Assembly: GCA_002269645.1 (NCBI GenBank)
Contig: NIVC01003311.1
Span: 1-64,000 of the forward strand
Direction: 5' to 3'
Origin: Macrostomum lignano
Lineage: Eukaryota
Length of the DNA stretch: 64,000 nt
Shown: one piece after another, positions 10,201-52,096 of the stretch
How the letters are laid out: each line of letters starts with the position of its first letter
How positions within the stretch are numbered: the first letter of the stretch is position 1
Notes under the pieces: model-generated
The model's database searches: none
Seen by the model: only the letters and a program-made list of their open reading frames with translations
Told to the model about the DNA's origin: nothing
Position numbers and translations under genes: made by a program

Positions 10201-14506
<4,306 letters not shown>

Positions 14507-18289: not shown

Positions 18290-23167
<4,878 letters not shown>

Positions 23168-28902: not shown

Positions 28903-29185
28903 TAGTGGCGGATCTAGAGTTTCATTTTTTCATTTTTGGGGCGGGGTGGCCCAAGTTTGGGGCGCCAACACGAGTATAAGGGGCGCCAATTTTTAAGCTA
29001 GGGGGCGCAAAAATGCGTGTAGGGGGCGAAAAATCAAGCTTAGGCGCGCAAAAAAAGCGTTAGGAGGCGAAAAATTGAGTTTAGGGGGCGCAAATTTAGG
29101 TTTTCGGGGGGCGCAATATGTTCTGTCAAGCTATTTTGGGGGGGGGAAGCGGTGGCGGCCGCCCCCCCCCCTAAATCCGCCCCTG
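28903..29185. mobile_element. Probable MITE (~283 bp) with imperfect 15-bp TIRs
   Basis: Left end tagtggcggatctag versus reverse complement of right end caggggcggatttag (12/15); cctgt(t) present at both flanks; internal ggggcg(c)aaa subrepeats. Confidence 0.6.
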
Positions 29186-30818
29186 CCTGTTAATATCTCA
29201 TTCATTCTATGTTGAAGTTTACGCACTTTTTTTCTATTAAAAATAAATTGTTGAAATCACGCATTTATACCCAAAAAATAAATGCATTGATGCTAAGAAT
29301 ACGTGAAATATTTTTGTTTTTAGTTTATAGATTGTATAAAATTTGTTTAAACTTGGGATCTTTAAACAGCAAAAATTCAGTTTAGCGTCACTTGACATTT
29401 TTGATCAGAGCAATGCGCTCTTGGGCGTTCACTGGCCACTGGGTAAAGTGACACTTGGGCGTCCGACTTGTTGGTATGAATTCAATAATCCAAGCATGCG
29501 GTGCAGCAGCTTGTATATTATCACGGTTATATAACATTATATCCGCTAGGTCGGAAGTCCTTGTATGTTTAGTCTAGACAATTCCAATTATTTACTATTT
29601 TGGGCATTTCAGGGCATACTCGTTTTTCAAATAAGAAAATGGATGGCTCACAAAATAGGCCTAAACATAATGTTAGTTGAGGGTTGCAATCACCAATTAG
29701 GATTAGGCCTAGGCCTATGGAAAAAGCCAAAATCAAAAGAGTACCCTATGCATGAGGCCTAAACCCTTGCCATTGTTGTTGGCCTTTCTTCTCTTCTCTG
29801 CTATTCTGCTAAAAGGTTTCTGGGCTGGCACTGAATAAGAGGTATTGTAATTGTAATTTTATTGTAATTTTGTCTTGGTCTAGAATACAATGATTAATAA
29901 CATAGACTTGTCTTGTTCAACTTAGCTACCTAGTAGGTCTGTTTGAGTTTTTATGTTAGGCATTACATTAGTACATTATTATTATTAATATTATTAATAT
30001 TAGCCTTATATGATTTACACTTACTAGAAAATATGCCATGCCATTTATAATTATAGACAGTTATATCTTTTAATAAATGTGAAGATCTAGATATCCCAAT
30101 GCAAGGAGAAAATGTAGGGATTAGAAGGCAATGCAATGGGGGCATAGTTCTAGTTTACTTTGATATATTCCAACCCCCCCTACCCTTGAATAGAAGGCAA
30201 AATAATTTAATGCGATAAACTAGAAGTATACTGCAATGGGAATAGGTTAAGATTATATTATGATACATTGTAAAAAATAGGTAGATAACATATAAAAGTA
30301 GTTATAGGCTAATCTCATAAAGTTTAGTTTAAGGCTTGCTTATTATTTAATTAATATAGCTTAATTAGCAAAGTTATTAATATTAGGCCTATTAGAAAAT
30401 TTTCAATAAGATATCTGTTGTCACTTAGTATCACTTATATATTATATTATATTTATAGTTACCAAGCTCTGCCTAGACCTAATGATAAACAAAGTTAAAG
30501 CTAATGTTAACATATTTTTAAAAAATATATAAGCTATAGGGAGTATATCACTAATTAATAATAATATATAAAACTATGCATATATTACAATTTAGCACTA
30601 ATTAGTATAATAAGATATATAAATATTTAAGTAATTGATCCATATATTTGGATTTGGAATCCAAATACAAAAAGTCTCACTTTTTTAGAAATACAAATGT
30701 TTTGAATTTGGAAATTTTATTTTCTAAATATTTCAGATGCTTCCAAATACAAAAAATCTAGAAACCTAAACAAATAAAGGAAATAAAACTTCTTAAAATA
30801 AGAAAGTATATTAAAACT

Positions 30819-31114
30819 CATACATGCGCAACAGTCGGCCAAGTTGGCCGATCTGGCCGACTGATTTTGCGGCCAACCAAGAAAGTTACAAAAATGCCCA
30901 CCCAAAAAAACACTAAGTAGTAGTACTAAGTAGCTGATGAGGCATTTTGGCTTTATAAGACAGTCATAGTTACTCCTGCCATTTACCCAAAGTTGCATTA
31001 ATTTTGCTTTCGGGTTTTTTACATGTAAGTCACATTTTTGGCCAAAAACTACATCGCATTTTTGTTAAAACTAAGTCGCATGGCCAACTAAATTTTGGAG
31101 GTTGCGCATGTATG
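30819..31114. mobile_element. hAT-type MITE (296 bp) carrying a 28S rRNA-derived module
   Basis: Perfect 14-bp TIR CATACATGCGCAAC / GTTGCGCATGTATG; perfect 8-bp TSD TTAAAACT at 30811-30818 and 31115-31122. Confidence 0.88.
30925..30988 (-). other. Degenerate 28S rRNA fragment (helix 69-71, R2/I-PpoI target region), copy A
   Basis: Reverse complement GGGTAAATGGCAGGAGTAACTATGACTGTCTTATAAAGCCAAAATGCCTCATCAGCTACTTAGT resembles the conserved 28S GGGTAAACGGCGGGAGTAACTATGACTCTCTTAAGGTAGCCAAATGCCTCGTCATCTAATTAGT (recalled from memory). Not a functional rRNA gene. Confidence 0.8.
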
Positions 31115-31365
31115 TTAAAACTTTATCTGAAAAATGCAACATCTTATATTAATTTTTGCAGTAGCATGGCCTACTTAAAAGAAAGTTATAGCAATTAGAG
31201 TTAATAAACTTTGGGGCCTTTGAAGCATTGAACATGAAGTTGCAAAAACATTTTTGGTAATCATTGTTTTAATATAATCATTGGTTAGTTTTTTCAAAAT
31301 GCAAATGCATAGACTTATGAAAATAGACACAATAAAGTTGTAAAATTGCACAAATGTAATATCAG

Positions 31366-34300
31366 CAGTGTTGGGCACTTCCGTTACCGAGTAACTTGCA
31401 AATGGTAACGCAAGTTACTTTTTCGTAAAGCGTTCCTTACGCAAGTTACTTTTTTATTTTAGTAACGGAGTAACGGTAAGTTACTCAAATTTCGGAAGTC
31501 CGTTACAGTTACTTTGCAACAATCGCAATATTTAAATTAAAAACTGAAATGCTTAGCTATTACGCCGGTTGTCACATGTTTTTGCATTTTTCATTCCTAA
31601 ATTCAAAATTAAGTGAATAGTATCATATGGTATTGCGCTTAATTAATGAAGAAATACTTGAAACATGTTTTACTTTGTTAATATTGGTAAAATATTTTCG
31701 CCTTTCATTGAGGCTTTTCATATTACCAATTCCAGAATCAGAATCGGTTCGGATCTTCCAAGAAAAACAGCAGTACAACTATTTAATTCTGTTGAATGTT
31801 TGACTGCCTTAACAACCTCACTTAGCACAATTTTTCACTTTCTTCTTAGCGATTTTCATTCAATAATAAAAACTTTATAGCACGTATCTCCCTCTAGTTA
31901 TGGAGAAAAAAAGTTATACTTCACAAATTGGTTCTGGTTATGGAACCAGAACTAGCTATATGAAAAGGCCCATTTTCGTTACTAAAAATTTTCAAGTTTG
32001 ATTCAAACAAACAACCAAAGAAATGATGGGTTTCGACCTTCGGGCTCCTTGTTAGGGAAGCCTTCGGGCCTCAGGCTCAGAAATAAATCAATTAGAGACC
32101 TGGCCCCCCACTCCTGTCAGATGGTCAGCCCCATGGTAGCTTGATCGGGTGGCGAGCAGTCTAGGTCCTATAGCTAAGAGAGGGACAGCGAGAGACGAGC
32201 AGGGAGAATTTTGAAAGTAGAAGTTAGCTAATCCGCAGATCAACTAACTTGCTGCCACCAGCCCGTGCGCCCTGGCTCACCACACCGGGACTCTCGAAAT
32301 CGGGCTTCCGACTAGAAGGGGCTTTGCACTTACCTGCCAACTAGTGTCTTTTTGCTGTCAATCTCGAAGTCATAGCCGATGATAAGGGACACTGCTGGGA
32401 CTAGATCGCATTGGCCATGCAGGTACAGAGGGGACTTGTGCAGGGGATTCTTGCGGTGGCGAGTCTATGGGGTAGCTGCATGTACTATTACATTGCTAAA
32501 TACGAAGATATGTACTTTTGGCCTTCAACGCGCCAACTAGCCTTTCATAGCGCTGATGATAGACTAACTCGAACTTCAGAGACCGCGTGATTCATTTACC
32601 CGAGCCGCTTGGCTACCCTAGAGTGCACAAAGTACATCTCTGGCGCCGATTCTGCACTTCTGGCAGTGTTGCTCACTGATTTGATAGATTGGTCGACTGA
32701 GAACTGTCTTGCCATTGGTCCACTGTGACCGGCGCCTACTAGCTTAGCTACTCATCTGAGCCATCGGTGAACAAAGAAATAAAACCGATAAAAATAACTG
32801 TTAGATTTAACCTTCTCCTTAGTTCACTTCACACTTCAGATTGAATTGGAGTCTTAGACTACTAGCAGTATTATTGAATGATTTCTGCCTCAGCAGCAGC
32901 ACTACTGAACAAAATGAGCAAAAGTGTGCGCCTAATTCAGCTACTGCAACAGGGGACAGATAAGGGATCACCCAATCAAGCAAGTCTAGGTAGCCTCTCA
33001 CCCAACCAATCAGAAACTCAACAGCCGGAGACCAGGTAATCCACAGTGACCGAATCGGCTCGATGCTCTGCAGCTGTAGACTCGGGATGATGCTGTCACA
33101 ATCTTCGCTGTTAGCTAGCAGGTGATGCTCTTAACTTGATGTTCGCTGCTGATGACCGGGGGACTCGTCCTTGATGATGATGGGGGGGGGAAGTCGCAAT
33201 CCGGGGATCAAGAAACGATGGTCAGTTCCGGGCCGGTGGAGTAGGAACCAGGCCAGAGTCGGAACAGGTACCGGTCCGAGCGGGCCAAAAACACCGGTTT
33301 AAATAGCCGCCAACTGGACCGCAGTTTGTTATAATGGAACACGTCGATTCTGATTGGCTGAGCCGTTTTGTTAAAATGAGCGCCGAATTTTCTGATTGGC
33401 TAAGCTTGTTGCTACCCAGAATCACGTGACCGAGAAATCCTATCAGTTCCCACAGGGTCGTAAAAAGATGACAGGTGCGGCCATAAATCACTCAAAATCG
33501 CAACAAAATGATTTATGACTTTTCGCGTAGGATTGACGGAAATTAATGAAAAAATATACATTAGAAAGCTCTTATTAAATAGAAAGTGAAGATAATGAAA
33601 AGAAACCGCTAATCACTAAATCCCAAAGTACTTTTAGGGGTAAAACGCATAGCTGTCAAAACTGTCACACGCTTGAGTGAACCCGAACTTACCAGAGGCC
33701 AGATGGCTCTGACCTCATAAATCTTGATGGCCTGTCAAAATGATGAGAAAAAAGCTACCGCCCGCATCCTCTCAGACCATCTGGCGCCCGCCTCAATACT
33801 GAGTGAGGCGCAGGTGGCTGTCAGACCAGCTTCGAAAGCGATGATTTATGACCCAAAAAGCTGCGCCTATGTTATTATGACTACTAGTATGACCAGACAT
33901 TATATCTAGTATAAATTTTATGAAAATTCGCAGAAAAATAATAAAAATGCCTTTAGCCTGCTGTCAGTAGGCTAGTAAGTTTAGAGCCCATGTGCTAGCG
34001 CGGGATTTGGGAAAAAGTGCGTCCTCGTCAGAAAGAAATTCATCTGTAGCCTCCACAAGTCCCTCCACTGGCACTGCAGTACACTACACCATTTTATATA
34101 CAGTTCTATTTATTTTACTCTATTGAATTATTGATATTCGTATATTTTATCATTTATAATTTTAATTATTGATTGCCATTGCCCATTGGTCCTTCTACTT
34201 GCCTCACATCGTGTCGCCAATTCCTGTCTCTGTCTGTTAATCGGTTAATCCCAATGCCCAATGGCAAATTTCGGTAACAACAAAGTGAAAAAATGTGCAA

Positions 34301-34482
34301 TGTGAAAAAAGCAGAAAATTTTGTTAATAACATGGGTAACGGAAGTGAGTAACGGACAGTAACTTAAAAGTTACCAGGTTTTTGTCTAAAGTTACTAGGC
34401 TAACGTAAGTTACTTTTTAAAAATTGGTAACTTAAGTTACAGTAACGCAAGTTACTTTTTTTGAGTAACTTGCCCAACACTG
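31366..34482. mobile_element. Non-autonomous hAT DNA transposon (3117 bp)
   Basis: 12-bp TIR CAGTGTTGGGCA / TGCCCAACACTG; perfect 8-bp TSD AATATCAG at 31358-31365 and 34483-34490; dense subterminal GTAAC/GTTAC motifs at both ends; no transposase ORF found. Confidence 0.92.
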
Positions 34483-34638
34483 AATATCAGTTAGTACTAG
34501 TAATTAGAATTAGCTAGATTAGTTATATAAGGATTAAATTTGATTCAAACTGATTTACTCTTTACTAAATTTTAATTCTTGCAAGTTCACTTGAAGTTGA
34601 ACTTCACTTAAAAAGTAGACTAGTTGCCTACTTAAATT

Positions 34639-34700
34639 ACTAATTAGATGATGAGGCACTTTTGTTACTTAATGTGTCATAGTTACAGCTGCCATTTACC
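34639..34700 (-). other. Degenerate 28S rRNA fragment, copy B
   Basis: Reverse complement GGTAAATGGCAGCTGTAACTATGACACATTAAGTAACAAAAGTGCCTCATCATCTAATTAGT aligns to the same 28S segment as copy A. Confidence 0.7.
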
Positions 34701-35504
34701 TTTTGTTTTTTGTTTATATTCCAAAATATATTTGGATATTCAGCTTCAGATTTGGAATTTTTTGTATATTTGAATTTGGTTTTAGAAACTTATAAAAATT
34801 CACATTAGGTCTATCACTAGAATACACTAATAACTAAAATTAAATTGGATCTTCTATCTATGAGAATTTTTTAATATCTTGATATTGATAGTGTTAGAAT
34901 TAGCAATTTGGTTATTTTTGAAGATATTCAGTATGTCAGCTTATGTTGTTAATTATGGTTGTATTATTCTATATCCAATATAGCAAAAAGCTATTATAGG
35001 GACACTCCCTTTTTGGTAGTTTTAAAAGTAGAAAAGTAACTTGGTATTCTTATTATTTCTATTAAATCTTATAAATAAACTTTTTTATCTATAAAACTCT
35101 AATATATACAAGGAGTGTCCCAAAAGTCAGTGCAATTTCTTCACTACAGCTTTTTCTGACCAATCAGAAATATTTATTATGTAGCAGTTAACAAGCAATT
35201 GTCTGCCCATTAAAATGACTTTCTATTTATTTCTGTATCTGCTGGCATTCTTGAGATATGAGCACTTTTCTGCCCCAACCCCTGTGCTACTTCTACAAAT
35301 TGCCATAGACCAAAGCTTTGTACCTGATGCATGAAACAAAAAACATTAAACAAACCAATAAAACACCCGCAACATGAAAGCTAAGGAAAGAACAGCTAAA
35401 AGTTAATCATCAAAATTGTCCTGAGACTTCTCCACATAGTTACCACTGCGCTGCACACTGCCATTGGCTGTGCATGTCATATTTATTATAAGTTTCATGT
35501 TTCT

Positions 35505-35810
35505 AATGTGTTACATAAAGGAATCCCATAAGGTTTCTGATGTGTTGGATAGGGGAATCCCATAAGGTTTCTGATATGTTGGATAGGGGAATCCCATAAG
35601 GTTTCTGATATGTTGGATAGGGGAATCTCATAAGGTTTCTGATATGTTGGATAGGGGAATCTCATAAGGTTTCTGATGTGTTGGATAGGGGAATCCCATA
35701 AGGTTTCTGATGTGTTGATTAGGGGAATCCCATAAGGTTTCTGATGTGTTGGATAGGGGAATCCCATAAGGTTTCTGATGTGTTGGATAGGGGAATCCCA
35801 TAAGGTTTTT
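35505..35810. repeat. 34 bp minisatellite (ggggaatcccataaggtttctgatgtgttggata)
   Basis: aggggaatcc recurs at 35551 and 35585. Confidence 0.95.
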
Positions 35811-35873
35811 GACTTGTGAAGTTCTATTTGAGATTTACCTTGAAAGCATTGCTTATCAATAAATTTTCAGATA

Positions 35874-37990
35874 ATGACAGCTACTAAAAGTAGTAGTATT
35901 GCTCCATTTCTGTTTGTTAGATTGAAGCATTACTACTGCCCGCCCTGCTGGTTAACAAGTAGATCCAGCTCTACCCTAGTTGGCCAGTCTCCGTCATCTA
36001 CTCTGAGGGCAATCCTATCAGAAGCAGAATGTCGATTGCAGTCTCCACCAGCGCACCCGTTTGTCCGAAATCTACTGTCGCAAGATCTTGGAGGTTTGGC
36101 CGCCAGCTTGCGTGGTTTGGCCGGCACGAAGCATCCACTGGTTGAGGATGCGAAACGGTCTTTGTTGTTCTCCGCTGTGGGAGGCAGTGGCGGCTTATCT
36201 AGTGATAGCAGTGCCTCATCAGCTTTGGCTTCAACTGTGGGTCAGACTCGGAGAGCTGTTGTGCTGCTAGTTGCTAGGGCTCACGAGGAGCTTTTGACTA
36301 AGTAGGTTGGCATACAGTGAAAATATCCTGTCTTTCATAAATGATGAAGCTAAGTAAAGATGCTGAATGAGGATGTTATGGAAATACGAGTATATTCCCA
36401 TTTTTTCATAAAATGGGAATGCCATAAATATATCCCATTTTTCATAAATAAGGATGCATAGAAATATCCCGTCTTATAAGCAAGGCCAGGGTGTTATGAA
36501 AATCTTCCACTTCTCATAAATGTTCATCTTATAAAATGTGCTATTTTTCGTAGCTGAGGATGCTACAAAAAATCCCATTTTTTCATAAATGAAAATGTCA
36601 CGAAAATTTCAGATGTTCTCTACTGTAGTTAAAATCTCCAATTTATTAAACTCTGCACAATATTATACTATCATAACTTAATTCCTAACTCTGTTCTCAA
36701 TCCCGACTTAACCAAGAGGCAGCGATCTGCACGACCTCGAACTTCTGCGCCGGCGCCAATGTCAGCTAGCAGACATTGCCGATTCTGTGTACACCGCCCT
36801 GTCAATCCATTCTCGAGTTGTACCGCCAACCAACTCTGATTTGGCTAAAGGCAACGCTTTAGCTGCTCTAGCTGGAGACTACTTGCTGGCGTCTGCTTCT
36901 CTGGGTCTGGCAGAGTTGGACAGACCGCCGGTTGTCAAATTAATTAGCGAAGCGATTTGCGATATTGTTGCTGGGCGCTTTAGCCTTATTGCGAATGCGG
37001 CTGGTACCGAGTAAGTTTCAAGCACTCTTGTTTTCTGATTGGCTGGTTGGTTAGTTGGGGAATCCCAGCTGTTTTCTGATTAGCTGGTTGGTCAGTTGGG
37101 GAATCCCAGCTGTTTTCTGATTGGCTGGTTGTCCAGTTGGGGAATTCCAGCAGACCAGCTGTTTTCTGATTGGCTAGTTGGTTAGTTGGGGAAACCCAGC
37201 TGTTTTCTGATTGGCTGGTTGTCCAGTTGGGGAATCCCAGCTGTTTTCTGATTGGTTGGTTGTTCAGTTGGGGAATCCCAGCTGTTTTCTGATTGGTTGG
37301 TTGTTCAGTTGGGGAATCCCAGCCGTTTTCTGATTGGTTGGTTGTTCAGTTGGGGAATCCCAGCTGTTTTCTGATTGGTTGGTTGTTCAGTTGGGGAATC
37401 CCAGCTGTTTTCTGATTGGTTGGTTGTTCAGTTGGGGAATCCCAGCTGTTTTCTGATTGGTTGGTTGTTCAGTTGGGGAATCCCAGCTGTTTTCTGATTG
37501 GTTGGCTTAGAAATCTATATTTTAAGGTTTACTATATAAATCAAAGTGCCAATTATACTTATTTAATTTTAGAAACAGCCTTAGCAGCAACAAATTGCCA
37601 GACCTGTCCGCTTGGCTCGACTATGTCCGTCTGACCTCTGCATCCTTACTATCGAAATCAATTCGCAGTGCATTGATTCTGGCAACCGACAATGCCAATT
37701 ACAATTATCAGCAGTGTGCAACCAGTTCTGCTGAGGATCAGTCTATCGAACAGTTCTCTGAGAGTTTCGCAATATTACAGCATGCCTATAAGGAAAAAGT
37801 TGAACACCCTTCAATCGCTGGAGCCTCTTGTCTGTTGAAAAGAATTTCAACTCCGGCAGAAATTAACGATCTGTTAAATTCGAATGCTGATCAATGTCTG
37901 TCAACCATTGACTCTTGGCCTGCTAGTGGCTACTGCACTCATTATTTGAGACAAATTGTTAGAGCACTGCTTGTTGAACAAAGAGTTTAA
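35874..37990 (+). CDS. PDSS2: All-trans-polyprenyl (decaprenyl) diphosphate synthase subunit 2, ~379 aa; exons 35874-36301, 36717-37010, 37573-37990
   Basis: ILSEAE...LLSQDLGGLAASLRGLAGTKHPL, RAVVLLVARA, QCQLADI, GNALAALAGDYLLASAS, SASLLSKS match PDSS2 ([46 protein letters not shown]). No DDxxD motifs, as expected for subunit 2. Junctions phase 2/2. Confidence 0.85.
37030..37505. repeat. Intronic 41 bp minisatellite (ggggaatcccagctgttttctgattggttggttgttcagtt) in PDSS2 intron 2
   Basis: Directly visible; fills most of intron 37011-37572. Confidence 0.95.
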
Positions 37991-38244
37991 TCAAGTTATT
38001 ACTGAGTGCCATTCTGTTCTGGGTACCGCTTTTAGTTTCCATTTATTAAAAGATGCTATATAAGTTTATTTGAATGCATTTTTTCTATTCCTAATTTCTT
38101 CTTTAATTTGTTAATCTTTGAATCACAGCATCAGTGACATTTTTATGTATAGAACATGAATATGTTGCGTTTCAGATCATATTGTCTTTGTGTCTTAATT
38201 TATTTACTTTTTTAAATATTAAGTGTCTCAATAACAAAGTCGGA

Positions 38245-39640
38245 GATTAGAAATGGGATTAGTGAGGTGATTTGGGATTAGTGAGATGATTTTGGATTAG
38301 AAATGGGATTAGTCGTGGGATTTGGGATTAGTGATGGGATTTAGGATTTTAAATTAGATTAGCGAGGTGATTTGGGATTAGAAATGGGTTTAGTGGTGGG
38401 ATTTGGGATTAGAAATGGGATTAGTGGTGGGATTTGGGATTAGAAATGGGATTAGTGGTGGGATTTGGGATTAGAAATGGGATTAGTGGTGGGATTTAGG
38501 ATTAGAAATGGGATTAGTGGTGGGATTTGGGATTAGAAATGGGTTTAGTGGTGGGATTTGGGATTAGAAATGGGATTAGTGGTGGGATTTGGGATTAGAA
38601 ATGAAATTAGTGGTGGGATTTGGGATTAGAAATGGGATTAGTGGTGGGATTTAGGATTAGAAATGGGATTAGTGGTGGGATTTGGGATTAGAAATGGGTT
38701 TAGTGGTGGGATTTGGGATTAGAAATGGGATTAGTGGTGGGATTTAGGATTAGAAATGGGTTTAGTGGTGGGATTTGGGATTAGAAATGGGTTTAGTGGT
38801 GGGATTTGGGATTAGAAATGGGATTAGTGGTGGGATTTGGGATTAGAAATGGGATTAGTGGTGGGATTTAGGATTAGAAATGGGTTTAGTGGTGGGATTT
38901 AGGATTAGAAATGGGTTTAGTGGTGGGATTTGGGATTAGAAATGGGATTAGTGGTGGGATTTGGGATTAGAAATGGGATTAGTGGTGGGATTTAGGATTA
39001 GAAATGGGATTAGTGGTGGGATTTAGGATTAGAAATGGGATTAGTGGTGGGATTTAGGATTAGAAATGGGTTTAGTGGTGGGATTTGGGATTAGAAATGG
39101 GATTAGTGGTGGGATTTAGGATTAGAAATGGGTTTAGTGGTGGGATTTGGGATTAGAAATGGGATTAGTGGTGGGATTTGGGATTAGAAATGGGTTTAGT
39201 GGTGGGATTTGGGATTAGAAATGGGATTAGTGGTGGGATTTGGGATTAGAAATGGGATTAGTGGTGGGATTTGGGATTAGAAATGGGTTTAGTGGTGGGA
39301 TTTGGGATTAGAAATGGGATTAGTGGTGGGATTTAGGATTAGAAATGGGTTTAGTGGTGGGATTTGGGATTAGAAATGGGATTAGTGGTGGGATTTGGGA
39401 TTAGAAATGGGATTAGTGGTGGGATTTAGGATTAGAAATGGGATTAGTGGTGGGATTTAGGATTAGAAATGGGATTAGTGGTGGGATTTAGGATTAGAAA
39501 TGGGATTAGTGGTGGGATTTGGGATTAGAAATGGGTTTAGTGGTGGGATTTGGAATTAGAAATGGGTTTAGTGGTGGGATTTGGGATTAGAAATGGGATT
39601 AGTGGTGGGATTTGGAATTAGAAATGGGATTAGTGAGGTG
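38245..39640. repeat. 31 bp G-rich minisatellite (gggattagaaatgggattagtggtgggattt)
   Basis: attt recurs at 38401 and 38432; three GGG tracts per unit. Confidence 0.97.
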
Positions 39641-39879
39641 ATTATTAAATAACCCAGTTATCAGTGAAAAGGAGATTAGTGGCTCGAACCCTGCATGGAT
39701 TAGAGATGTTTTCATGACACAAATTTTTCCCTGCAGGCAAAGGCGCCAACCTGCTCTGCCCCTCCCAATTCTTGTTTGTGTCTCATCTTCTCTTGCGCGT
39801 TTCAATTTTTTTTAACTAAAATTCTTGGTTCTTAAAGTTAAGTCATATAGACTCGAATTTCTTTTCTGAATCCGTTTTT

Positions 39880-40790
39880 AGTGTGTGATTCTCAGTGTGG
39901 GATTCCTAGTGTGCGATTCTCAGTGTGGGATTCCCAGTGTGGGATTCTCAGTGTGTGATTCTCAGTGTGTGATTCTCAGTGTGTGATTCTCAGTGTGGGA
40001 TTCCCAGTGTGTGATTCTCAGTGTGTGATTCTCAGTGTGGGATTCCTAGTGTGTGATTCTCAGTGTGTGATTCCGATTGTGTGATTCTCAGTGTGGGATT
40101 CCTAGTGTGTGATTCTCAGTGTGTGATTCTCAGTGTGTGATTCTCAGTGTGGGATTCTCAGTGTGTGATTCCGATTGTGTGATTCTCAGTGTGTGATTCT
40201 CAGTGTGTGATTCTCAGTGTGTGATTCTCAGTGTGGGATTCCCAGTGTGTGATTCTCAGTGTGTGATTCTCAGTGTGGGATTCCCAGTGTGTGATTCTCA
40301 GTGTGTGATTCTCAGTGTGGGATTCCTAGTGTGTAATTCTCAGTGTGTGATTCTCAGTGTGTGATTCTTAGTGTGTGATTCTTAGTGTGTGATTCTCAGT
40401 GTGATTCTCAGTGTGATTCTCAGTGTGTGATTCTCGGTGTTGGATTCTCAGTGCGTGATTCTCATTGTGTGATTCTCGGTGTTGGATTCTCAGTGCGTGA
40501 TTCTCAGTGTGTGATTCTCATTGTGTGGTTTTCAGTGTGGGATTCTCAGTGCGTGATTCTCAGTGTGTGATTCTCATTGTGTGATTCTCATTGTGGGATT
40601 CTCAGTGCGTGATTCTCATTGTGTGGTTCTCAGTGTGTGATTTTCAGTGTGGGATTCCCAGTGTGTGATTCTCAGTGTGTGATTCCCAGTGTGGGATTCT
40701 CGGTGTGGGATTCTTAGTGTGTGATTCTCAGTGTGGTTCTCAGTGTGGTTTTTCGGTTTGGGATTCTCAGTGTGTGATTCTCAGTGTGTG
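39880..40790. repeat. 14 bp minisatellite (tgtgattctcagtg / tgggattcccagtg)
   Basis: Directly visible; ends ~140 nt before the NADSYN1 ATG. Confidence 0.95.
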
Positions 40791-40930
40791 TCACGTATTC
40801 CTACGGTGATTGTCAGTAGATATTTTAGTGTGAATTTTTTTTTCAATTTCATGCAAATCTCCAACATAAAATTTGATTTCCCGAAAGAAGAAGCCTGCAG
40901 ATAAATAAACAAATATAATTTCGCAGCAAT

Positions 40931-43900
40931 ATGGAAGCCGCTAGCCTGTGCACAATGGCCACCTGTGTGCTCAACCAATGGTCCATGGATTTTGCCGGTA
41001 ATAAGCGCAGAATATTATCGAGTATTATCGAAGCTAAACGACTTGGAGCATCTTATCGACTTGGCCCTGAGCTGGAGATCACCGGCTACGGTTGTTCTGA
41101 CCATTTCTACGAAGGTGACACCTTTCTGCATAGTTGGCAGGTGTTAAGGGATCTGCTAATTGATCCGGCTACTAGGGATATTGTCTGCGATGTTGGCATG
41201 CCTGTGAGGCATCTCGGCGTGGCCTACAATTGTCGGGTTGTGTTTCTCAACGGTCAGGTGCTGCTCATTCGACCGAAAACTCGAATGGCTGACGATGGAA
41301 ATTACAGGTTATTAGTTAGTGTTTGTGATTTGAAGCAATCAGACCCTCCCTGAAGTTTGTGATTTGAAGCAATCAGACCCTCCCTGAAGTTTGTGATTTG
41401 AAGCGATCAGACCCTCCCTGAAGTTTGTGATTTGTAGTGACCAGACCCCTGAAGTATCTGAATAGAAGCGATCAGACCCTCCCTGAAGTATCTGAATAGA
41501 AGCGATCAGACCCTCCCTGAAGTATCTGAATAGAAGCGATCAGACCCTCCCTGAAGTATCTGAATAGAAGCGATTAGACCCTACCTGAAGTAGTGAAGTA
41601 TCTAAATAGAAGCGACTAGACCCTACCTGAAGTATCTAAACAGAAGCGATCAGACCCTCCCTGAAGTATTTGAATAGAAGCGATCAAACCCTCCCTGAAG
41701 TATCTGAATAGAAGCGATCAGACCCTCCCTGAAGTATCTGAATAGAAGCGATTAGACCCTACCTGAATTATCTGAATAGAAGCGACCAGACCCTCCGTGA
41801 AGTATCTAAATAGAAGCGATCAAACCCTCCCTGAAGTATCTAAATAGAAGCGACCAGACCCTCCCTGAAGTATCTGAATAGAAGCGATCAGACCCTCCCT
41901 GAATTATTTGAATAGAAGCGATCAAACCCTCCCTGAAGTATCTGAGTTTATCTTTTAATAGTTAGAAAAATATATGAGCCTCCATGAGCAGTGCTATAAT
42001 ACATTAATTATCAGGGGTTTAGAAGTCAGTAAATACCATACCCACCCGCAGGGAATCCCGCTGGTTCTCCCGTTGGACAAAACGCGGCGAAATTGACAAA
42101 ACTTTCCAGCTGCCAGACTTGATTGAGTCGGCCATTGGCCAATCCACTGCTCCGTTTGGCGACGCTGTGCTGGCATTTCGCGATGCCAGTCTGGGTTTTG
42201 AAACTTGCGAAGAGATTTGGACAATCGGATCCAGTCATATCGATCTGTTTCTGAATGGTGTTGACATTGTGGTGAACAGCTCGGGTAGCTATCACCAGCT
42301 GAGAAAGCTCAATCGCCGGGTAGATCTAATCTCTAGCTGTACTAATAAAGCTGGTGGATTGTATCTGTACTCTAATCTGAGAGGCTGTGATGGCGAACGA
42401 GTTTATTACGACGGTTCCGCTTTGGTTGCTATGAACGGCAGGTTGGTAGCTCAGAGTCGGCAATTCGCTTTAGAAGAAGTCGAAGTCACTTCGGCCACTG
42501 TTGACTTGGAAGAGATTCGCAACTATAGGCAGGCCAACCGGTCACACTGCCAGCAGAGCGCTGAGGCACCCGCATTGACTCGAATTGCTGTGCCGCAGTG
42601 GCGTCTGTGCCGCCAAGATGTGGCTGCGGCCTGTCAGGTGGGTGAGATGGTGAGATAGGTACTTGAGATTGCGGTGAGATAGATACGTGAGATTGGGGTG
42701 AGATAGATACGTGAGATTGGGGTGAGATAGATACGTGAGATTGGGGTGAGATAGATACTTGAGATTGGGGTGAGATAGATGCTTGAGATTGGGGTGGGAT
42801 ATATACTAGAGATTGGGGTGAGATAGATACGTGAGATTAGGGTGAGATAGATGCTTGAGATTGGGGTGAGATAGATACGTGAGATTAGGGTGAGATAGAT
42901 ACTAGAGATTGGGGTGAGATAGATGCTTGAGATTGGGGTGAGATAGATGCTTGAGATTGGGTGAGATAGATACTAGAGATTGGGGTGAGATAGATACTTA
43001 AGATTGGGGTGAGATAGATACGTGAGATTAGGGTAAGATAGATACGTGAGATTGGGGTGAGATAGATACGTGAGATTGAGGTGAGATAGATACGTGAGAT
43101 TGGGGTGAAATAGATGCTTGAGATTGGGGTGGGATATATACGTGAGATTGAGGTGAGATAGATACTAGAGATTGGGGTGAGATAGATGCTTGAGATTGGG
43201 GTGGGATAGATACTAGAGATTGGGGTGAGATAGATACTAGAGATTGGGGTGAGATAGATGCTTGAGATTGGGGTGGGATAGATACTAGAGATTGGGGTGA
43301 GATAGATACTAGAGATTGGGGTGAGATAGATGCTTGAGATTGGGGTGAGATAGATACGTGAGATTGGGGTGAGATAGATACTAGAGATTGGGGTGAGATA
43401 GATACTAGAGACTGAAGTGAGATAGATACTAGAGATTAGGGTGAGATAGATCCTAGAGATTGGTGTGAGATAGATGCTTGAGATTGGGTGAGATAGATAC
43501 TAGAGATTGGGGTGAGATAGATGCTTGAGATTGGGGTGAGATAGATGCTTGAGATTGGGTGAGATAGATAATTGAGATTGGGGTGAGATAGATAATTGAG
43601 ATTGGGGTGAGATAGATGCTTGAGATTGGGTGAGATAGATACTAGAGATTGGGTGAGATAGATACTAGAGATTGGGGTGAGATAGATAATTGAGATTAGG
43701 GTGAGATAGATACTAGAGATTGGGGTGAGATAGATGCTTGAGATTGGGGTGAGATAGATGCTTGAGATTGGGGTGAGATAGATACTAGAGATTGGGGTGA
43801 GATAGATGCTTGAGATTGGGTGAGATAGATAATTGAGATTGGGGTGAGATAGATACTAGAGATTGGTGTGAGATAGATGCTTGAGATTGGGTGAGATAGA

Positions 43901-46900
43901 TACTAGAGATTGGGGTGAGATAGATGCTTGAGATTGGGGTGAGATAGATGCTTGAGATTGGGTGAGATAGATGCTTGAGATTGGGGTGAGATAGATACTA
44001 GAGATTGGGGTGAGATAGATACTAGAGATTGGGGTGAGATAGATACGTGAGATTGGGGTGAGATAGATACTAGAGATTGGGGTGAGATAGATACGTGAGA
44101 TTAGGGTGAGATAGATACGTGAGATTAGGGTGAGATAGATAACTAGAGATTGGGGTGAGATAGATGCTTGAGATTGGGGTGGGATATATACGTGAGATTA
44201 GGGTGAGATAGATACTAGAGATTGGGGTGAGATAGATACTAGAGATTGGGGTGAGATAGATGCTTGAGATTGGGGTGGGATAGATACTTGAGATTGGAGT
44301 GAGATAGATGCTTGAGATTGGGATGAGATAGATGCTTGAGATTGGGTAAAATAGATACTTGAGATTGGGGTGAGATAGATGCTTGAGATTGGGTGAAATA
44401 GATACTTGAGATTAGGGTGAGATAGATACTTGAGATTGGGGTGAGATAGATACTAGAGATTAAGGTGATATAGATACTTGAGACTGGGGTGAGATAGATG
44501 CTTGAGATTGGGTGAAATAGATACTTGAGACTGGGGTGAGATTGATACTAGAGATTAGGGTGAGAAAGATACTAGAGACTGGGGTGAGATTGATACTAGA
44601 GATTAGGGTGAGATAGATACTTGAGACTGGGGTGAGATACTAGAGATACTAGATACTAGATATTAAGGCGAGATAGATACTTTGCATGTAAGACGGAGGA
44701 AAAGCGTCAAACGTGTAATAGTGTGTATTTAAGCTCACATTAATTCTCGAAAATACCAGTTCTAATAGTTAGAAATTTTTGTTTCAACTTACCAACGGCA
44801 GAGCACCAACCTACCAATGGAGCCCCGCTATCACACGCCGGAAGAGGAAATCGCCCTGGGCCCAGCCTGCTGGCTGTGGGATTATCTCAGACGAAGCGGT
44901 CAGTCAGGCTATTTTCTTCCCCTAAGCGGAGGCATTGACAGTACGGCCACTTCGTGTCTTGTCTACAGCATGTCTGTACAGGTGTTCGAGTCTGTTCAGT
45001 CCGGCTGTCAAGAGGTAATATAGTTACTTGGCTAAGAATTCTGAAACTTGCGCGTACTGTTTTCTAAGAATACTGAAACTTGCGCGCAATGTTTTTTTTA
45101 AGAATACTGATGCGCGCCCTGTTTTCTAAGAATACTGAAACTTGCGCGCAATGTTTTTTTTAAGAATACTGATGCGCGCCCTGTTTTCTAAGAATACTGA
45201 AACTTGCGCGCAATGTTTTTTTTAAGAATACTGATGCGCGCCCTGTTTTCTAAGAATACTGAAACTTGCGCGCAATGTTTTTTTTAAGAATACTGATGCG
45301 CGCCCTGTTTTCTAAGAATACTGAAACTTGCGCGCAATGTTTTTTTTAAGAATACTGATGCGCGCCCTGTTTTCTAAGAATACTGAAACTTGCGCGCAAT
45401 GTTTTTTTTAAGAATACTGATGCGCGCCCTGTTTTCTAAGAATACTGAAACTTGCGCGCAATGTTTTTTTTAAGAATACTGATGCGCGCCCTGTTTTCTA
45501 AGAATACTGAAACTTGCGCGCAATGTTTTTTTTAAGAATACTGATGCGCGCCCTGTTTTCTAAGAATACTGAAACTTGCGCGCAATGTTTTTTTTAAGAA
45601 TACTGATGCGCGCCCTGTTTTCTAAGAATACTGAAACTTGCGCGCAATGTTTTTTTTAAGAATACTGATGCGCGCCCTGTTTTCTAAGAATACTAAATCT
45701 TGCGCGCAATGTTTTTTTTAAGAATACTGATGCGCGCCCTGTTTTCTAAGAATACTGAAACTTGCGCGCAATGTTTTTTTTTAAGAATACTGATGCGCGC
45801 CCTGTTTTCTAAGAATACTGAAACTTGCGCGCAATGTTTTTTTTTAAGAATACTGATGCGCGCCCTGTTTTCTAAGAATACTGAAACTTGCGCGCAATGT
45901 TTTTTTTAAGAATACTGATGCGCGCCCTGTTTTCTAAGAATACTGAAACTTGCGCGCAATGTTTTTTTTAAGAATACTGATGCGCGCCCTGTTTTCTAAG
46001 AATACTAAATCTTGCGCGCAATGTTTCTAAGAAAACAAACTTCTGCGCATTGTTTTCTAAGAAAACTGAAACTTGCGCGCAATGATTTCTAAGAATACTG
46101 AAACTTGCGCGCAATGATTTCTAAGAATACTGAAACTTAAGCGCATTGTTTTCTAAGAATACTGAAACTTGCGCGCCCTGTTTTCTAATAAGAATACTAA
46201 ATCTTGCGCGCAATGTTTCTAAGAAAACAAACTTCTGCGCATTGTTTTCTAAGAAAATTCTATAGCTATATTAGCTATTATATAGCTAATATAGTTACTT
46301 GGCTAAGAATTCTGAAACTTGCGCGCAATGATTTCTAAAAATACTGAAACTTGAGCGCACTGTTTTCTGAGAATACTAAAATTCGCGCACACTGTTTTCC
46401 AAGAAAACTGAAACTGCGCATTGTTTTCTAAGAATACTGAAACTTGCGCGCACTGTTTTCTAAGAATACTAGATCTTGCGCGCACTGTTGCATACCAGAA
46501 CGAGTTTCATAAAATTTCTTCATTTAAATAAAATTCCAGGTGCTGCAAGACCTTCGCAGAATAGTTCGCGATCCTCAGTTCCTACCCGGCTCGCCGCAGG
46601 ACATTTGCTCGCGCCTGTTCACCACCTGCTATATGGGCTCCGAGAACAGCTCGAGTGAGACTAGACAGCGAGCTGAACAACTGGCTAAGGAGATTGGAGC
46701 AAGTCATCTGGCTTTGAGGATTGATGCTGCGGTATATATAGACTTTTGTATAGTTTATCCCATTTTTTATTATTCCAAATCCCATAAATGAGGATAATCC
46801 AATTTTGGATCCTAAGAGTCCCAATACATAATTGCTGGAAATAATTTAATCTCCGATATAAAAAATCCTCATTTATGATTTAATGGGATAAATCGATTTC

Positions 46901-49900
46901 CAATCTCAAAAATCCCAATTTGTGATTTGATGGGATAAATCGATTTCTAATCACAAAAATCCCCATTTGTGATTTGATGGGATAAATCGATTTCCAATCT
47001 CAAAAATCCCAATTTGTGATTTGATGGGATAAATCGATTTCTAATCACAAAAATCCCCATTTGTGATTTGATGGGATAAATCGATTTCTAATCACAAAAA
47101 TCCCCATTTGTGATTTGATGGGATAAATCGATTTCCAATCTCAAAAATCCCAATTTGTGATTTGATGGGATAAATCGATTTCTAATCACAAAAATCCCCA
47201 TTTGTGATTTGATGGGATAAATCGATTTCCAATCTCAAAAATCCCAATTTGTGATTTGATGGGATAAATCGATTTCTAATCACAAAAATCCCCATTTGTG
47301 ATTTGATGGGATAAATCGATTTCTAATCACAAAAATCCCCATTTGTGATTTGATGGGATAAATCGATTTCCAATCCCAAAAATCCCCATTTGTGATTTGA
47401 TGGGAAAAATGGATTTCCAATCTCAGAAATCCCCAATTATGATTTGATCGGATTAATCGATTTTCGATCCCCTAAAATCCCCAATCATGATTTGATGGGG
47501 TAGTTAAAATCCCTTATCCCTGCCCAAATCCAGGTATCGGCCCTGGTAGCCATATTCGTTGCCTGCACCGGTTTGCAACCGAAATTTCGAGCTCACGGTG
47601 GCAGCGCCCAGGAAAATCTGGCATTACAGAATGTGCAAGCTCGGGTTCGAATGGTGCTGGCCTATCTATTTGCTCAGCTGGTGCTGCTGGCAAGGTGAGC
47701 GCGGTGAACTTTGGACTTTTGGAGAGATTTGGAATAAGAATGGGATCTTGAGAGAGATTTGGGATGAGAATGGGATCTTGGGAGAAATTTAGGATAAGAA
47801 TGGGATCTTGGGAGAGATTTAGGATGAGAATGGGATCTCGGGAAAGATTTGGGATGAGAATGAGATCTGGGGAGACATTTAGGATAAGAATAGGATCTTG
47901 GGAGAGATTTGTGATGAGAATGTGATCTCGGGAGAGATTTGGGATGAGAATGGGATCTCGGGAGAGATTTGGGATAAGAATGAGATCTTAGGAGAGATTT
48001 GGGATGAGAATGAGATCTTAGGAGAGATTTGGGATAAGAATGAGATCTTAGGAGAGATTTGGGATAAGAATGGGATCTTGGGAGAGATTTGGGATGAGAA
48101 TGAGATCTTAGGAGAGATTTGGGATAAGAATGAGATCTTAGGAGAGATTTGGGATAAGAATGGGATCTTGGGAGAGATTTGGGATGAGAATGGGATCTCG
48201 GGAGAGATTTGGGATGAGAATGGGATCTTGAGAGAGATTTGGGATGAGAATGGGATCTCGGGAGAGATTTGGGATGAGAATGGGATCTTGAGAGAGATTT
48301 GGGATGAGAATGGGATCTCGGGAGAGATTTGGGATGAGAATGGGATCTTGAGAGAGATTTGTGATAAGAATGGGATCTCAGGAGAGATTTGGAATGAGAA
48401 TGGAATCTGGGAAGAGATTTTAAAGAATCTTTCTAAGATATTTCTTAGATATTTCTAACAATGTTAAGCTGCATGATGACCTGAGGGATAAAAGTTCTCC
48501 ATGTTTTCCCCACAGAGGCCTGACAGGCAACCTGTTGGTGCTGGGCAGCGCCAATCTTGACGAAGGCCTACGCGGCTACATGACAAAATACGACTGCTCT
48601 AGTGCCGATGTTAATCCCATCGGAGGGATTAGTAAATCCGATTTAAGATCATTTATCCGCTATTCGATGCGTAGGCACGGAATTAGCATTCTGGGAGAGA
48701 TTTTCTCAGCTCCGCCTACGGCTGAGTTAGAGCCACTGGCCGCTAATGGGCAGCTGGCCCAGACTGATGAAGTTGACATGGGTATGACCTACGATGAGCT
48801 GTCAGCATATGGCAGATTGCGCAAACTTGACAAGTGCGGCCCGGTTGCCATGTTCCTGCGCCTGCGGCGTCTGTGGCCTCAGCATTCCGCCAAAGTTGTG
48901 GCCGATAAAGTGAAGCATTTTTTTCGATCTTATTCGATTAACCGGCACAAAGTGACTGTGCTGACTCCGTCCTATCATGCAGAGGCTTATAATATTGATG
49001 ATAACCGGTTCGATCATCGGCAGTTTCTTTACAATGTCAACTGGCCTTGGCAGTTTCAACAGATTGATCAACTAGTTGACCAGATGGCCGGTTGCGAACC
49101 CGTGTTGACTACTGATAAAGTGAGTGTGAGTAGTAAGCTTGCATGTTTTTTATGTAGATGAGGGAATGTTAATTGGCTAGCCAAGTAACCAGGTAACCAA
49201 GTAACCGGGTAACCAAGTAACCGGGTAACCAAGTAACCGGGTAACCAAGTAGCCGGGTAACCAGGCAACTAAGTAACCAAGTAACCGGGTAACCAAGTAA
49301 CCGGGTAACCAAGTAACCGGGTAACCAAGTAACCGGGTAACCAAGTAACCGGATAACCAAGTAACCGGGTAACCAAGTAACCGGGTAACCAAGTAACCGG
49401 GTAACCAAGTAGCTGGGTAACCAGGCAACTAAGTAACCAAGTAACCGGGTAACCAAGTAACCGGGTAACCAAGTAACCGGGTAACCAAGTAGCCGGGTAA
49501 CCAGGCAACTAAGTAACCAAGTAACCGGGTAACCAAGTAACCGGGTAACCAAGTAACCGGGTAACCAAGTAACCGGGTAACCAAGTAACAGGGTAACCAA
49601 GTAACCGGGTAACCAAGTAACCGGGTAACCAAGTAACCGGGTAACCAAGTAACCGGGTAACCAAGTAACCGGGTAACCAAGTAACCGGGTAACCAAGTAG
49701 CCGGGTAACCAGGCAACTAAGTAACCAAGTAACCGGGTAACCAAGTAACCGGGTAACCAAGTAATCAGGTAACCAGGCAACTAAGTAACCAGCTATAACC
49801 AGGTAACCAGATAGCCAGGTAACCAAGGAACCAGGTAACTTAGTAAATTTTAACAGTTTTTCCATAAATATCTAACCAGATGGAGCTTGGTCATCCGGAA

Positions 49901-51011
49901 TCGAGCAATCGTGCTGGAGGTACTGGCGCTGGCAACAGCGGCTCAACGTACACGACAACAGGAACGGTTGATAAAATACAGACTAATGATACTACTGGAA
50001 GTAAAAAGAGCGTTCTGAGTAGCAGCGTGGGATATCAGGTAAGAAATATCAGATAATTTTGGAGTTGGCAGTCACTGAATGCAAATCCCAAGTGAAGTGC
50101 AAAGAATATGTTCAGTTAAATTTCAATTTGGGCTTTAGAGGTTACTGAGGTCATTGAGTGTCGCTAAAAAGGATTGGGTTTTTAGAGGTCATTTATACAT
50201 CAAAAGGGATTTTTAAAGGTCGCTGACTGGCACTAAATAATTGGGTTATAGGTCACTTAGGGTCACTAGAAGTTACTGCATGTAACTTAGAATCTGGTTA
50301 AAGGTCACTTAAGGTCACTAGAGGTCACTGAATGTCACTTAAAGAATCGGGTTAAAGATCATTTAAGGTCACTGGAGGTCACTTAAGAATTGGTTTAAAG
50401 GTCACTAGAGGTCACTTAAGAATCGGTTTAAAGGTCACTTAAGCTCTAGAGGTCACTGAAGGTCACTAGAGGTCACTGAAGGTCACTAGAGGTCACCGGA
50501 GATCACTGAATGTTATCGTAAGCTTCCAAGCTAACTTAATCCCAAAAAACTTGCAATTCTCCCCCCCCCCTCCCAACAGGGGTGCGTTCGCCTCCTTGCC
50601 CAGATCGGCAGGCAGCGGGCCACCTGGCGCGGTGGCATCGCGTCCACCCCGATTCCGCCTGTAGAATCCGCCGCAGCCAAAATCCTGGCCTCCGGTAACC
50701 TCGCCGCTGCACGTCGCCGGCCTCAACAACAACAGCAGCAACTGCAGGGCCGGATTGGAAAGCGGACTTCGCCGCTGGCAGTTAAAGCTAATAATGATTC
50801 TGGTCGATGCCGACACAGGAATCAGTCGAATAGAGCCGCTAGCAAGGTGCAGCAGCTTGGCAATGTTGAACAGGCGCCTATAGTTGCTAGGCTGACTCTG
50901 TCTCCTAGAGGTTGTCGAGTTGTGCAGCAGCAGCAGCAGCATCAGGAGCCGGATGAGCCAACTGGTCATCGTCGCTTTCCTGCTCCAAGAATGAGGCTTG
51001 CAATTCCTTGA
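40931..51011 (+). CDS. NADSYN1: Glutamine-dependent NAD+ synthetase; exons 40931-41307, 42052-42637, 44802-45014, 46540-46731, 47534-47694, 48516-49119 (conserved, 711 codons) plus predicted 49880-50038 and 50580-51011
   Basis: Nitrilase triad motifs [20 protein letters not shown]; PP-loop LPLSGGIDS; [15 protein letters not shown]; [33 protein letters not shown]; PTAELEP; [12 protein letters not shown]. All junctions GT-AG and phase compatible. The last two exons are less certain. Confidence 0.95.
41325..41945. repeat. Intronic 34 bp minisatellite (gaagtatctgaatagaagcgatcagaccctccct), NADSYN1 intron 1
   Basis: gaagta recurs at 41451 and 41485. Confidence 0.95.
42655..44680. repeat. Intronic ~24 bp minisatellite (gagattggggtgagatagatacgt), NADSYN1 intron 2
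   Basis: About 2 kb array starting immediately after the donor at 42638. Confidence 0.97.
45035..46490. repeat. Intronic 62 bp dimeric minisatellite (two related ~31 bp gcgcgc-containing subunits), NADSYN1 intron 3
   Basis: 62-nt period between lines 45061 and 45121. Confidence 0.95.
46870..47510. repeat. Intronic 47 bp minisatellite (tgtgatttgatgggataaatcgatttctaatcacaaaaatccccatt), NADSYN1 intron 4
   Basis: tgtgat recurs at 46921 and 46968. Confidence 0.95.
47715..48425. repeat. Intronic 30 bp minisatellite (gggatgagaatgggatctcgggagagattt), NADSYN1 intron 5
   Basis: 30-nt period; accounts for ORF 47898..48458. Confidence 0.95.
49180..49845. repeat. Intronic 16 bp minisatellite (ccaagtaaccgggtaa), NADSYN1 intron 6
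   Basis: Directly visible; accounts for the - strand LPGYLVT ORFs. Confidence 0.95.
50190..50510. repeat. Degenerate ~10 bp repeat (ggtcactaga / ggtcacttaa), predicted NADSYN1 intron 7
   Basis: Repeated ggtcact cores visible. Confidence 0.8.
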
Positions 51012-51042
51012 ATGCCAGGTGTTAGTCCTGTATAGTTTTTAA

Positions 51043-51093
51043 ACTAATGAGATGACGAGGCCTGTCTGTCATAGTTACTCCCGCCGTTTACCC
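51043..51093 (-). other. 28S rRNA-derived module, copy C, with the central R2/I-PpoI site replaced
   Basis: Reverse complement GGGTAAACGGCGGGAGTAACTATGAC-agacag-GCCTCGTCATCTCATTAGT: 26/26 and 18/19 matches to the recalled 28S flanks; central 19 nt replaced by 6 nt. Confidence 0.88.
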
Positions 51094-52096
51094 ACCTGAT
51101 CGTGTCAACCAAGTTAGTTAGTTTTCTCTTGATATTAATCACTTTTTAACACCAGTTTTCTCTATAGAAAATATTTTTATTCATCTATCTAGTTTTAGAT
51201 AGCTTTTTAACTTTTAAAAATCTTCATTCGTTTTCATTCTAGTTAGTGAATATGACCTTTTGACTGTTAAATTAGCTATATTTGGCTTTCTTTTTTCACT
51301 TTGAATCGATTCGCGTTACTTGTTACTTACAGTAGAATGCAGTATCAAATTGTTTTTATTCGTCCTTTTGAGCTCGTAGATTTGATCCTGTTCTTGCGTC
51401 TAATTTATACCTTCTGTCTTTAGCTAAATATACAGAAAATCAAAGTTAACGGCTTATTTTGATCTTTCGTCATTTAATTAGGTCAGTAGAAAGAATCCGT
51501 TGAGAAGCATGCCTTGGTTGGGATTCTGAGTAGGGTAGCAACTTAGCGGTGAACGAGTCTGACTCTAGCGCTACAACCTTCGCCATGGTGTCTTGCACCC
51601 TGGCGCACTTTAAGCGACAATTGCCACACAACCGGCGTGAGGCATTGACTCCCCTGAGCAGGCACACATGTGCGCGGATACGTACGCAGTCATACGCACA
51701 GGCACACACTCACACAGGAGTGTACATCGGCCCTAACTTTATCATTGAGGTTGTACAACCGAGATTGCAATTTAGCCCCCAAATTAATGAGACTGCACTT
51801 GGAATCGAGCCTGGGCCGCTGGCACATCAGAGCACCGCGCTGGAACAAAAGAAAGAAATATTTCAGCTGCTAGTTTGAATAATCAGTTTTGCTTAATATA
51901 GTTAATTTTTCATCTTTTTTGTCATTTCTGACAGACCAGTGCCATGTAGTTCGCTCCCACTTACTGATTGATCTTGTCTTCCCTTCCATATTTTGGGCTG
52001 AGTTGATCAAATCACTTCTTTTACGCTTCAAAAGAAGAAAAAGCCTGCATTGCTTGCAAAAAAGATTGATTAAGCATAAAAGAAGCAGAGCAGACA

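Follow-up and report, generated by a model that had tools for sequence, protein, structure and literature searches.

Three antisense copies of a 28S rRNA core segment in a Macrostomum lignano contig, one of them carried by a foldback transposable element

Contig NIVC01003311.1 of the flatworm Macrostomum lignano (assembly GCA_002269645.1) contains, within the 64,000 nucleotides (nt) analysed here (positions 1 to 64,000 of the forward strand, hereafter the window), three short modules that all lie on the + strand and are antisense to the conserved part of 28S ribosomal RNA (rRNA) surrounding the insertion site of the R2 retrotransposon. A first-pass annotation, made from the letters of the sequence, had described these three copies (named here A, B and C), and each was recovered where it had been placed, the end of C being extended from 51093 to 51095. 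Homeologous contigs were available for comparison: the loci L001 and L003 were identified through an exact WDR48 product, and the loci L124 and L126 through cluster identifiers of the NAD synthetase. The modules and the structures immediately associated with them are as follows.

30811 to 30818, unstranded: target-site duplication TTAAAACT, left copy, 8 bp
30819 to 31114, unstranded: foldback MITE (miniature inverted-repeat transposable element) of 296 bp, with perfect terminal inverted repeats and similar arms, carrying module A in its unique centre
30925 to 30988, + strand: module A, antisense of 28S positions 1-64, GGGTAAAC...CTAATTAGT; its three CpGs are decayed and its centre is diverged
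30989 to 31004, + strand: possible 16-nt continuation of module A, weak; a BLAST extension seen with 9 of 12 ribosomal DNA (rDNA) queries and, alone, not significant
31115 to 31122, unstranded: target-site duplication TTAAAACT, right copy, 8 bp
34639 to 34700, + strand: module B, present in all three homeologs, with no inverted-repeat arms
51043 to 51095, + strand: module C, with both arms kept, present in all three homeologs, without transposon ends

The reference used for 28S was a cross-eukaryote consensus, which may differ from the 28S of M. lignano itself. An 81-nt version of the 28S string given in the first-pass annotation is found without mismatch in over 120 metagenomic contigs of eukaryotic rDNA, which confirms the identity of the reverse complement of the module. 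In the window, the 19-mer ACTAATTAGATGACGAGGC has three matches at up to three mismatches, against 0.02 expected, and the 25-mer GTCATAGTTACTCCCGCCGTTTACC picks out A and C, with 0 expected. The Rfam model of the eukaryotic large-subunit (LSU) rRNA places A and B at approximately 2200-2312, with weak scores (12-16 bits in local scans). The module covers positions 3721-3784 of human 28S, including the R2 and I-PpoI sites; this placement is fixed by the target G that it shares with the guide RNAs SNORD87 and sn2343, discussed below.

As a control against general rDNA debris, the window was searched by BLAST with 12 rDNA-bearing contigs of 8-14 kb, picked so that the 18S-28S region should be covered (the rRNA boundaries within them were not mapped). 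Only A (E ~1e-9 to 1e-11), B (~1e-7 to 1e-8) and C (~1e-4) were matched by 12/12 queries, and all of these matches cover the same 64 positions of 28S. A weak fourth segment (31638-31671), obtained with 7 of the 12 queries (34-76 nt, 66-76% identity, E ~2), was set aside by eye as a probable chance match. A profile hidden Markov model of the module detected no fourth copy in the window or in the homeologous loci. Moreover, a scan of the whole window with Rfam (E <= 1) returned no rRNA or small nucleolar RNA (snoRNA) match, the only hits being microsatellites that resemble mir-341. No similarity was seen between the flanking sequences of the three copies, in keeping with the unrelated flanks described earlier. 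The module is a discrete unit and not general rDNA debris; the earlier exclusion of random rDNA fragments is therefore upheld by the BLAST control and by the absence of any further copy in the profile search.

The ends of this unit are only approximately shared. At the ACTAAT end (sense ...CUAAUUAGU) A, B and C share one position in the window, and the overall spread is 0-2 nt, since B reads TCACTAAT in the homeologs, i.e. it contains two further 28S bases past this end. The other boundary is looser (0-16 nt), with A reaching about 16 nt and C 2 nt further. Of the common boundaries proposed in the first-pass annotation, the first is thus real to within 2 nt, while the second holds as an approximation only. 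Similarity to 28S past these ends was not significant (p = 0.1-0.9), though Infernal stretched the alignments of A and B.

Module A forms the unique centre of the MITE and is mobile as part of it. The terminal inverted repeats of the element are perfect (14/14 bp, 30819-30832 and 31101-31114; element ends CATACATGCGCAAC), and the module lies midway between them. The two arms (~106 and ~110 nt) are mutual reverse complements, with an arm score reached by 0/1000 shuffles, and the DNA fold of the element has a z value of -3.6. In both homeologs, L124 and L126, the segment corresponding to window 30819-31114 is absent and a single TTAAAACT marks the empty site. It follows that the MITE, including module A, inserted as one unit in the lineage of the window after the divergence of the homeologs; for this copy the "mobile module" of the first-pass annotation has become an observed transposition product, flanked by an 8-bp duplication. 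Target duplications of 8 bp are made by hAT elements, and also by P and Merlin elements. The duplication is consistent with hAT, but this feature is shared with the other two. At the inner end of the left arm, the first 9 nt of the module (ACTAAGTAG, including its T-to-G difference from 28S) recur 12 nt upstream, so that window 30913-30933 reads ACTAAGTAGTAGT ACTAAGTAG, a small tandem duplication.

A second insertion with a duplication of the same length separates A from B.

31366 to 34482, unstranded: hAT-like DNA transposon, 3.1 kb, non-coding, ends CAGTGTTGGGCA

This element is bordered by a perfect 8-bp duplication, AATATCAG (31358-31365 and 34483-34490), and contains subterminal AAGTTAC/GTAACG repeats. 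It is absent from both homeologous contigs and is therefore, like the MITE, private to the window contig, which indicates that transposons generating 8-bp duplications moved in this lineage after the homeologs diverged. Before the MITE and the 3.1-kb element inserted, the sites of A and B were approximately 590 bp apart.

The other two copies have a different history. B and C are older than A, since both are present in all three homeologs. Palindromic arms were looked for around B and C and none were found, and their flanks bear no resemblance to the MITE arms. Between the homeologs, module B differs at 3/62 positions and its flanks at 4/98. This equal rate of change indicates that B is probably a neutral relic.

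In copy C, 6 nt stand in place of the 19 nt at the centre of the module, around the R2 site. The history of this locus was reconstructed by aligning 4.5 kb of unique sequence from the window, L001 and L003 with MAFFT: the window groups with L003, from which it diverges by 0.45%, and L001 (1.5%) falls outside this pair. With this topology, the ancestral C contains GAUGAUGAGG and ACCCGC directly followed by CUGA. The window copy carries two derived changes within 57 nt (51043-51099), one T to C in the C box and one G to A near the D box, amounting to about 13 times the local background (P ~0.012). The T-to-C change restores the 28S state at a CpG.

The three copies also differ in the pattern of change within the module. 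All three CpGs are decayed in A and B, through the same three transitions in both. One of these (GACGAGG to GATGAGG) is, however, also the ancestral state of C, retained in two of the three homeologs, the window C being derived. The transitions common to A and B that had been noted previously are therefore real, but not all of them are lacking in C. Shared CpG decay was considered as proof of a common ancestry of A and B and rejected, as parallel mutation is possible and C has one of the changes. The observed/expected ratio of CpG in the window is 0.67.

Using the deletion in C as an independent partition of the module into centre and arms, we counted 12 change events of A and B together in the 38 nt of the centre, versus 11 in the 90 nt of the arms (Fisher p = 0.013). 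The excess in the centre could reflect a past constraint on a C box and a guide, a source whose centre had drifted beforehand, or repeated breakage at the R2/I-PpoI site.

Taken together, we consider it probable, with moderate confidence, that the three copies represent an rDNA-derived passenger module family, inserted antisense outside the rDNA, of which one copy is proven to be transposon-borne and the other two are relics. Copy A was carried by cut-and-paste transposition as the cargo of a non-autonomous element whose transposase is encoded elsewhere. The family might have been founded when a piece of 28S was captured, whether as filler during the repair of a double-strand break or gap, or as a reverse-transcribed rRNA fragment. 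B and C would stem from this family, as earlier products or in decayed form, and the module as such would have no R2-related function. Several points weigh against this interpretation. Only one copy of the MITE has been seen, with no second copy in the approximately 130 kb of M. lignano DNA searched, so that the module is at most a putative part of a MITE family consensus. B and C are armless, with flanks unlike the MITE arms. Three copies of one 64-nt stretch that end almost alike presuppose a shared source, so far hypothetical. Finally, plain neutral decay does not predict a centre that changed faster in A and B and was deleted in C.

An alternative that takes this last point into account, possible but doubtful in our opinion, is that the module is, or gave rise to, a box C/D snoRNA gene. 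The candidate is copy C, which would guide 2'-O-methylation at the equivalent of human G3723 and would be processed from the primary transcript of NAD synthetase/WDR48, either from a 149-nt intron in the 3' untranslated region (51019-51167) or from the intergenic spacer; A and B would be dead relatives without a D box. The following features of C are relevant.

51052 to 51058, + strand: C-box position of C, AUGACGA in the window and AUGAUGA (the ancestral form) in L001 and L003
51068 to 51095, + strand: 28-nt complement of 28S GCGGGUAAACGGCGGGAGUAACUAUGAC, without mismatch in L001 and L003 and with one G-to-A change in the window
51096 to 51099, + strand: CUGA at the D-box position, directly 3' of the guide; register ACCC + 2 nt + CUGA

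In box C/D snoRNAs the fifth paired base upstream of the D box is the methylated position (the box D + 5 rule). The ancestral C comprises AUGAUGA, then 37 nt ending in the perfect 28-nt complement to 28S, and then CUGA. The same register, ACCC + 2 nt + CUGA, occurs in the Rfam family sn2343 (consensus UGAUGA...GCCGUUUACCCGUCUGA), and from the shared register and the box D + 5 rule it follows that C, sn2343 and SNORD87 aim at the same G of GGGUAAAC. For human SNORD87, which guides modification of LSU-G3723, this register is found in UUUUGCCGUUUACCCAGCUG, the sequence implied by a published antisense oligonucleotide (PMC10911272). Copy C also lies on the sense strand of the neighbouring genes, 32 nt past the NAD synthetase stop codon (51009-51011, validated). 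The stretch between the C box and the guide, which is free to vary in an RNA of this type, is the part that has diverged in A and B and been deleted in C, and UGAUGA is ancestral in all three copies.

UGAUGA is, however, just one CpG transition away from the 28S antisense sequence, and the 9 nt upstream of the C box, not needed in a snoRNA, are also 28S antisense. The match of C to sn2343 reaches 15.1 bits versus a gathering score of 60 (E = 0.4), and the SNORD87 family was not reported. C' and D' boxes are missing, and the RNA would be short (~60 nt). There is no terminal stem of 4-5 bp beside the boxes; the minimum-energy fold of C has a 6-bp outer stem (AACUAA/UUAGUU) and is no better than shuffles (z = -1.5). 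Of the two derived changes in the window C, one breaks the C box, which suggests relaxed rather than strong constraint. In A and B no CUGA follows the guide region; CUGC as a D-box variant in these copies was considered and rejected, its register being one base off the known site of 2'-O-methyladenosine (Am), with the key A missing. The 149-nt intron could be predicted from a pair of GT...AG dinucleotides at 51019 and 51167, which would bound it and leave C 68 nt from its 3' end. Copy C is best described as a putative snoRNA, a candidate and not a shown one.

A more specific scenario, which we consider unlikely, is that the 28S-antisense insert C has become a SNORD87-like guide for the conserved 2'-O-methylguanosine (Gm) site and has been caught in the act. 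A single CpG transition (GACGA to GAUGA) would have created the C box, the spacer would have been lost, and the CUGA would already have been in register. If true, new box C/D guide RNAs would have a source of raw material in the antisense 28S fragments that transposons and repair spread. An expressed and guiding C would provide a concrete and datable path from the target's own sequence to a guide snoRNA.

Another alternative, improbable in our view, derives B, C and the piece captured by the MITE independently from one stable 28S rRNA fragment, as its retro-pseudogenes. A non-LTR (long terminal repeat) retrotransposon reverse transcriptase would have copied this RNA from a fixed 3' end (...CUAAUUAGU), with variable 5' truncation. 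The observed pattern, a sense-3' boundary constant within 0-2 nt and a sense-5' boundary varying by 0-16 nt, is that expected of target-primed reverse transcription, although the variation at the 5' end depends on weak extensions. The fixed end, moreover, lies within one strand of a helix in the Rfam structure and not at a known site of rRNA cleavage. The window does contain a young non-LTR element of the APE/RT/RNase H type (18428-22946) that is 99% identical to other M. lignano copies, and human chimeras of the long interspersed element LINE-1 and 28S favour the 28S region that contains the module segment; however, a reading of the flanks of B and C revealed no target-site duplication, tail or LINE junction. 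The more diverged centre is also left unexplained by such an origin.

It is very unlikely that the copies act as ectopic R2 target sites, i.e. decoys or additional targets, or that their centres are scars left by cutting with a 28S-specific endonuclease followed by error-prone repair: the module does extend from -36 to +28 about the R2 nick, A and B having small indels there and C a deletion from -10 to +9 with 6 nt of filler, flatworms do have R2 elements, including lineages without target specificity (PMC5035012), and R2 RNAs can retain 9-36 nt of upstream 28S (PMC3774820), but there is no R2-type sequence in the window or at any copy, none of the three has an interruption at the R2 site, CpG decay in the arms would change a protein-binding site, B evolves neutrally, and A was moved by a DNA transposon. 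The "R2-target decoy" of the first-pass annotation, and the insertions at the R2 site of dispersed copies that were looked for in connection with it, thus found no counterpart; the only reverse transcriptase in the window belongs to the APE/RNase H-type non-LTR element and is not of the R2 type. The interpretation of the -36 boundary as the leader generated by the R2 ribozyme was rejected for flatworms, since the planarian R2 ribozyme cuts at -28.

The genes around the modules were defined as follows. The coding sequence of the NAD synthetase was rebuilt from the window by homology and enumeration of GT-AG introns.

40931 to 51011, + strand: glutamine-dependent NAD synthetase gene, 8 exons, 907 amino acids; the rebuilt product is identical to PAA52042.1

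Approximately 1 kb after C, on the + strand, a 798-amino-acid open reading frame (ORF; 52097-54493) encodes WDR48 and is 99% identical to an M. lignano protein. B lies 1.17 kb upstream of a polyprenyl synthase gene called at 35871-37990 (380 amino acids). Within the latter, an exon-like ORF (36787-37014) with a GDYLLA motif had no protein found in a word-indexed search, and the called product may splice differently there.

The relationships among the homeologs switch along the contig, between ~28000-36500 (L124/L126) and 50400-54900 (L001/L003). Around C, the closest homeolog of the window is NIVC01000829.1 (0.45%). Around B, the other two contigs show no difference from each other in the 160 nt compared, and the window departs from them at 7/160 (~4%). 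This pattern suggests exchange between subgenomes by recombination or gene conversion, or a mosaic assembly.

The window is also rich in other repeats. The non-LTR retrotransposon at 18428-22946 consists of an ORF1-like reading frame followed by an ORF of 929 amino acids with reverse transcriptase and RNase H domains; it is 97-99% identical to many M. lignano proteins in UniRef and has full-length relatives with an APE domain, so this family looks young and may be active. A (GTTA)n microsatellite of 4.3 kb (10202-14505, ~1070 units) is the source of the spurious weak mir-341 matches to Rfam. Minisatellites are represented by about 60 arrays in 64 kb (unit 13-62 bp, up to 2 kb), and nearly every intron or spacer has its own long array, including the introns of the NAD synthetase (41308-50579).

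The significance of the modules depends on their abundance and function. Should the MITE turn out to belong to an abundant family, the short list of rDNA-derived transposon cargo would gain both a route by DNA transposon and the core of helices 68-71, which is conserved universally. Such copies would constitute many genomic look-alikes of the standard R2/I-PpoI target, a point that bears on tools for rDNA-targeted insertion and on the mapping of reads in this model flatworm. With neither an abundant MITE family nor a guiding C, what remains is ordinary genomic debris and one neat transposon insertion.

Several known systems resemble parts of what is described here. The 5' leader of some R2 RNAs, with its 9-36 nt of upstream 28S, overlaps the upstream arm of the module, and the module holds the R2 site; in contrast to R2, however, it is associated with no R2 sequence or insertion, its orientation is unrelated to any element, and its mobility is due to DNA transposition. 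With SNORD87 and sn2343 (RF01172), copy C has in common the guide core GCCGUUUACCC and the spacing to CUGA, hence the predicted target G. In these RNAs the guide precedes an internal D' box within a longer molecule, whereas the CUGA of C would be a terminal D box. The complementarity to 28S is 28 nt in C compared with ~11-12 nt in the two snoRNAs, and only in C is the sequence upstream of the C box also 28S antisense, with a score far under the Rfam threshold.

In primates, 28S pieces fused to LINE-1 are derived preferentially from positions 3636-4115, which contain the module segment (PMC13174262). Like the modules, these chimeras are short, dispersed fragments of the same part of human 28S. 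Unlike them, the modules have no LINE junction, duplication or tail and are far shorter than the 269-nt median, and for A the route was that of a DNA transposon.

As for the carrier, hAT-type MITEs and foldback elements are, like the MITE of copy A, short and non-coding, with perfect terminal inverted repeats, an 8-bp duplication and a clean empty site; the element described here differs in its rRNA-derived unique centre, and its 8-bp duplication also fits P and Merlin. Transposons with rDNA-derived pieces are also known, namely SINE28, a short interspersed element (SINE) of mammals with pieces of 28S, and Pokey of Daphnia, with repeats from the intergenic spacer (PMC10946416). SINE28 and Pokey/mPok resemble A in that a piece of rDNA within a mobile element has spread outside the rDNA. 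The carrier of A is nevertheless a foldback MITE with an 8-bp duplication, as opposed to a SINE (SINE28) or a piggyBac element (Pokey/mPok), and its cargo, in contrast to theirs, is an antisense piece of 64-80 nt from helices 68-71, the most conserved core of 28S, in the one copy of the carrier seen. The foldback MITE with its antisense core of helices 68-71 is therefore a new example of the known rDNA-carrying transposons, and not a new kind of element.

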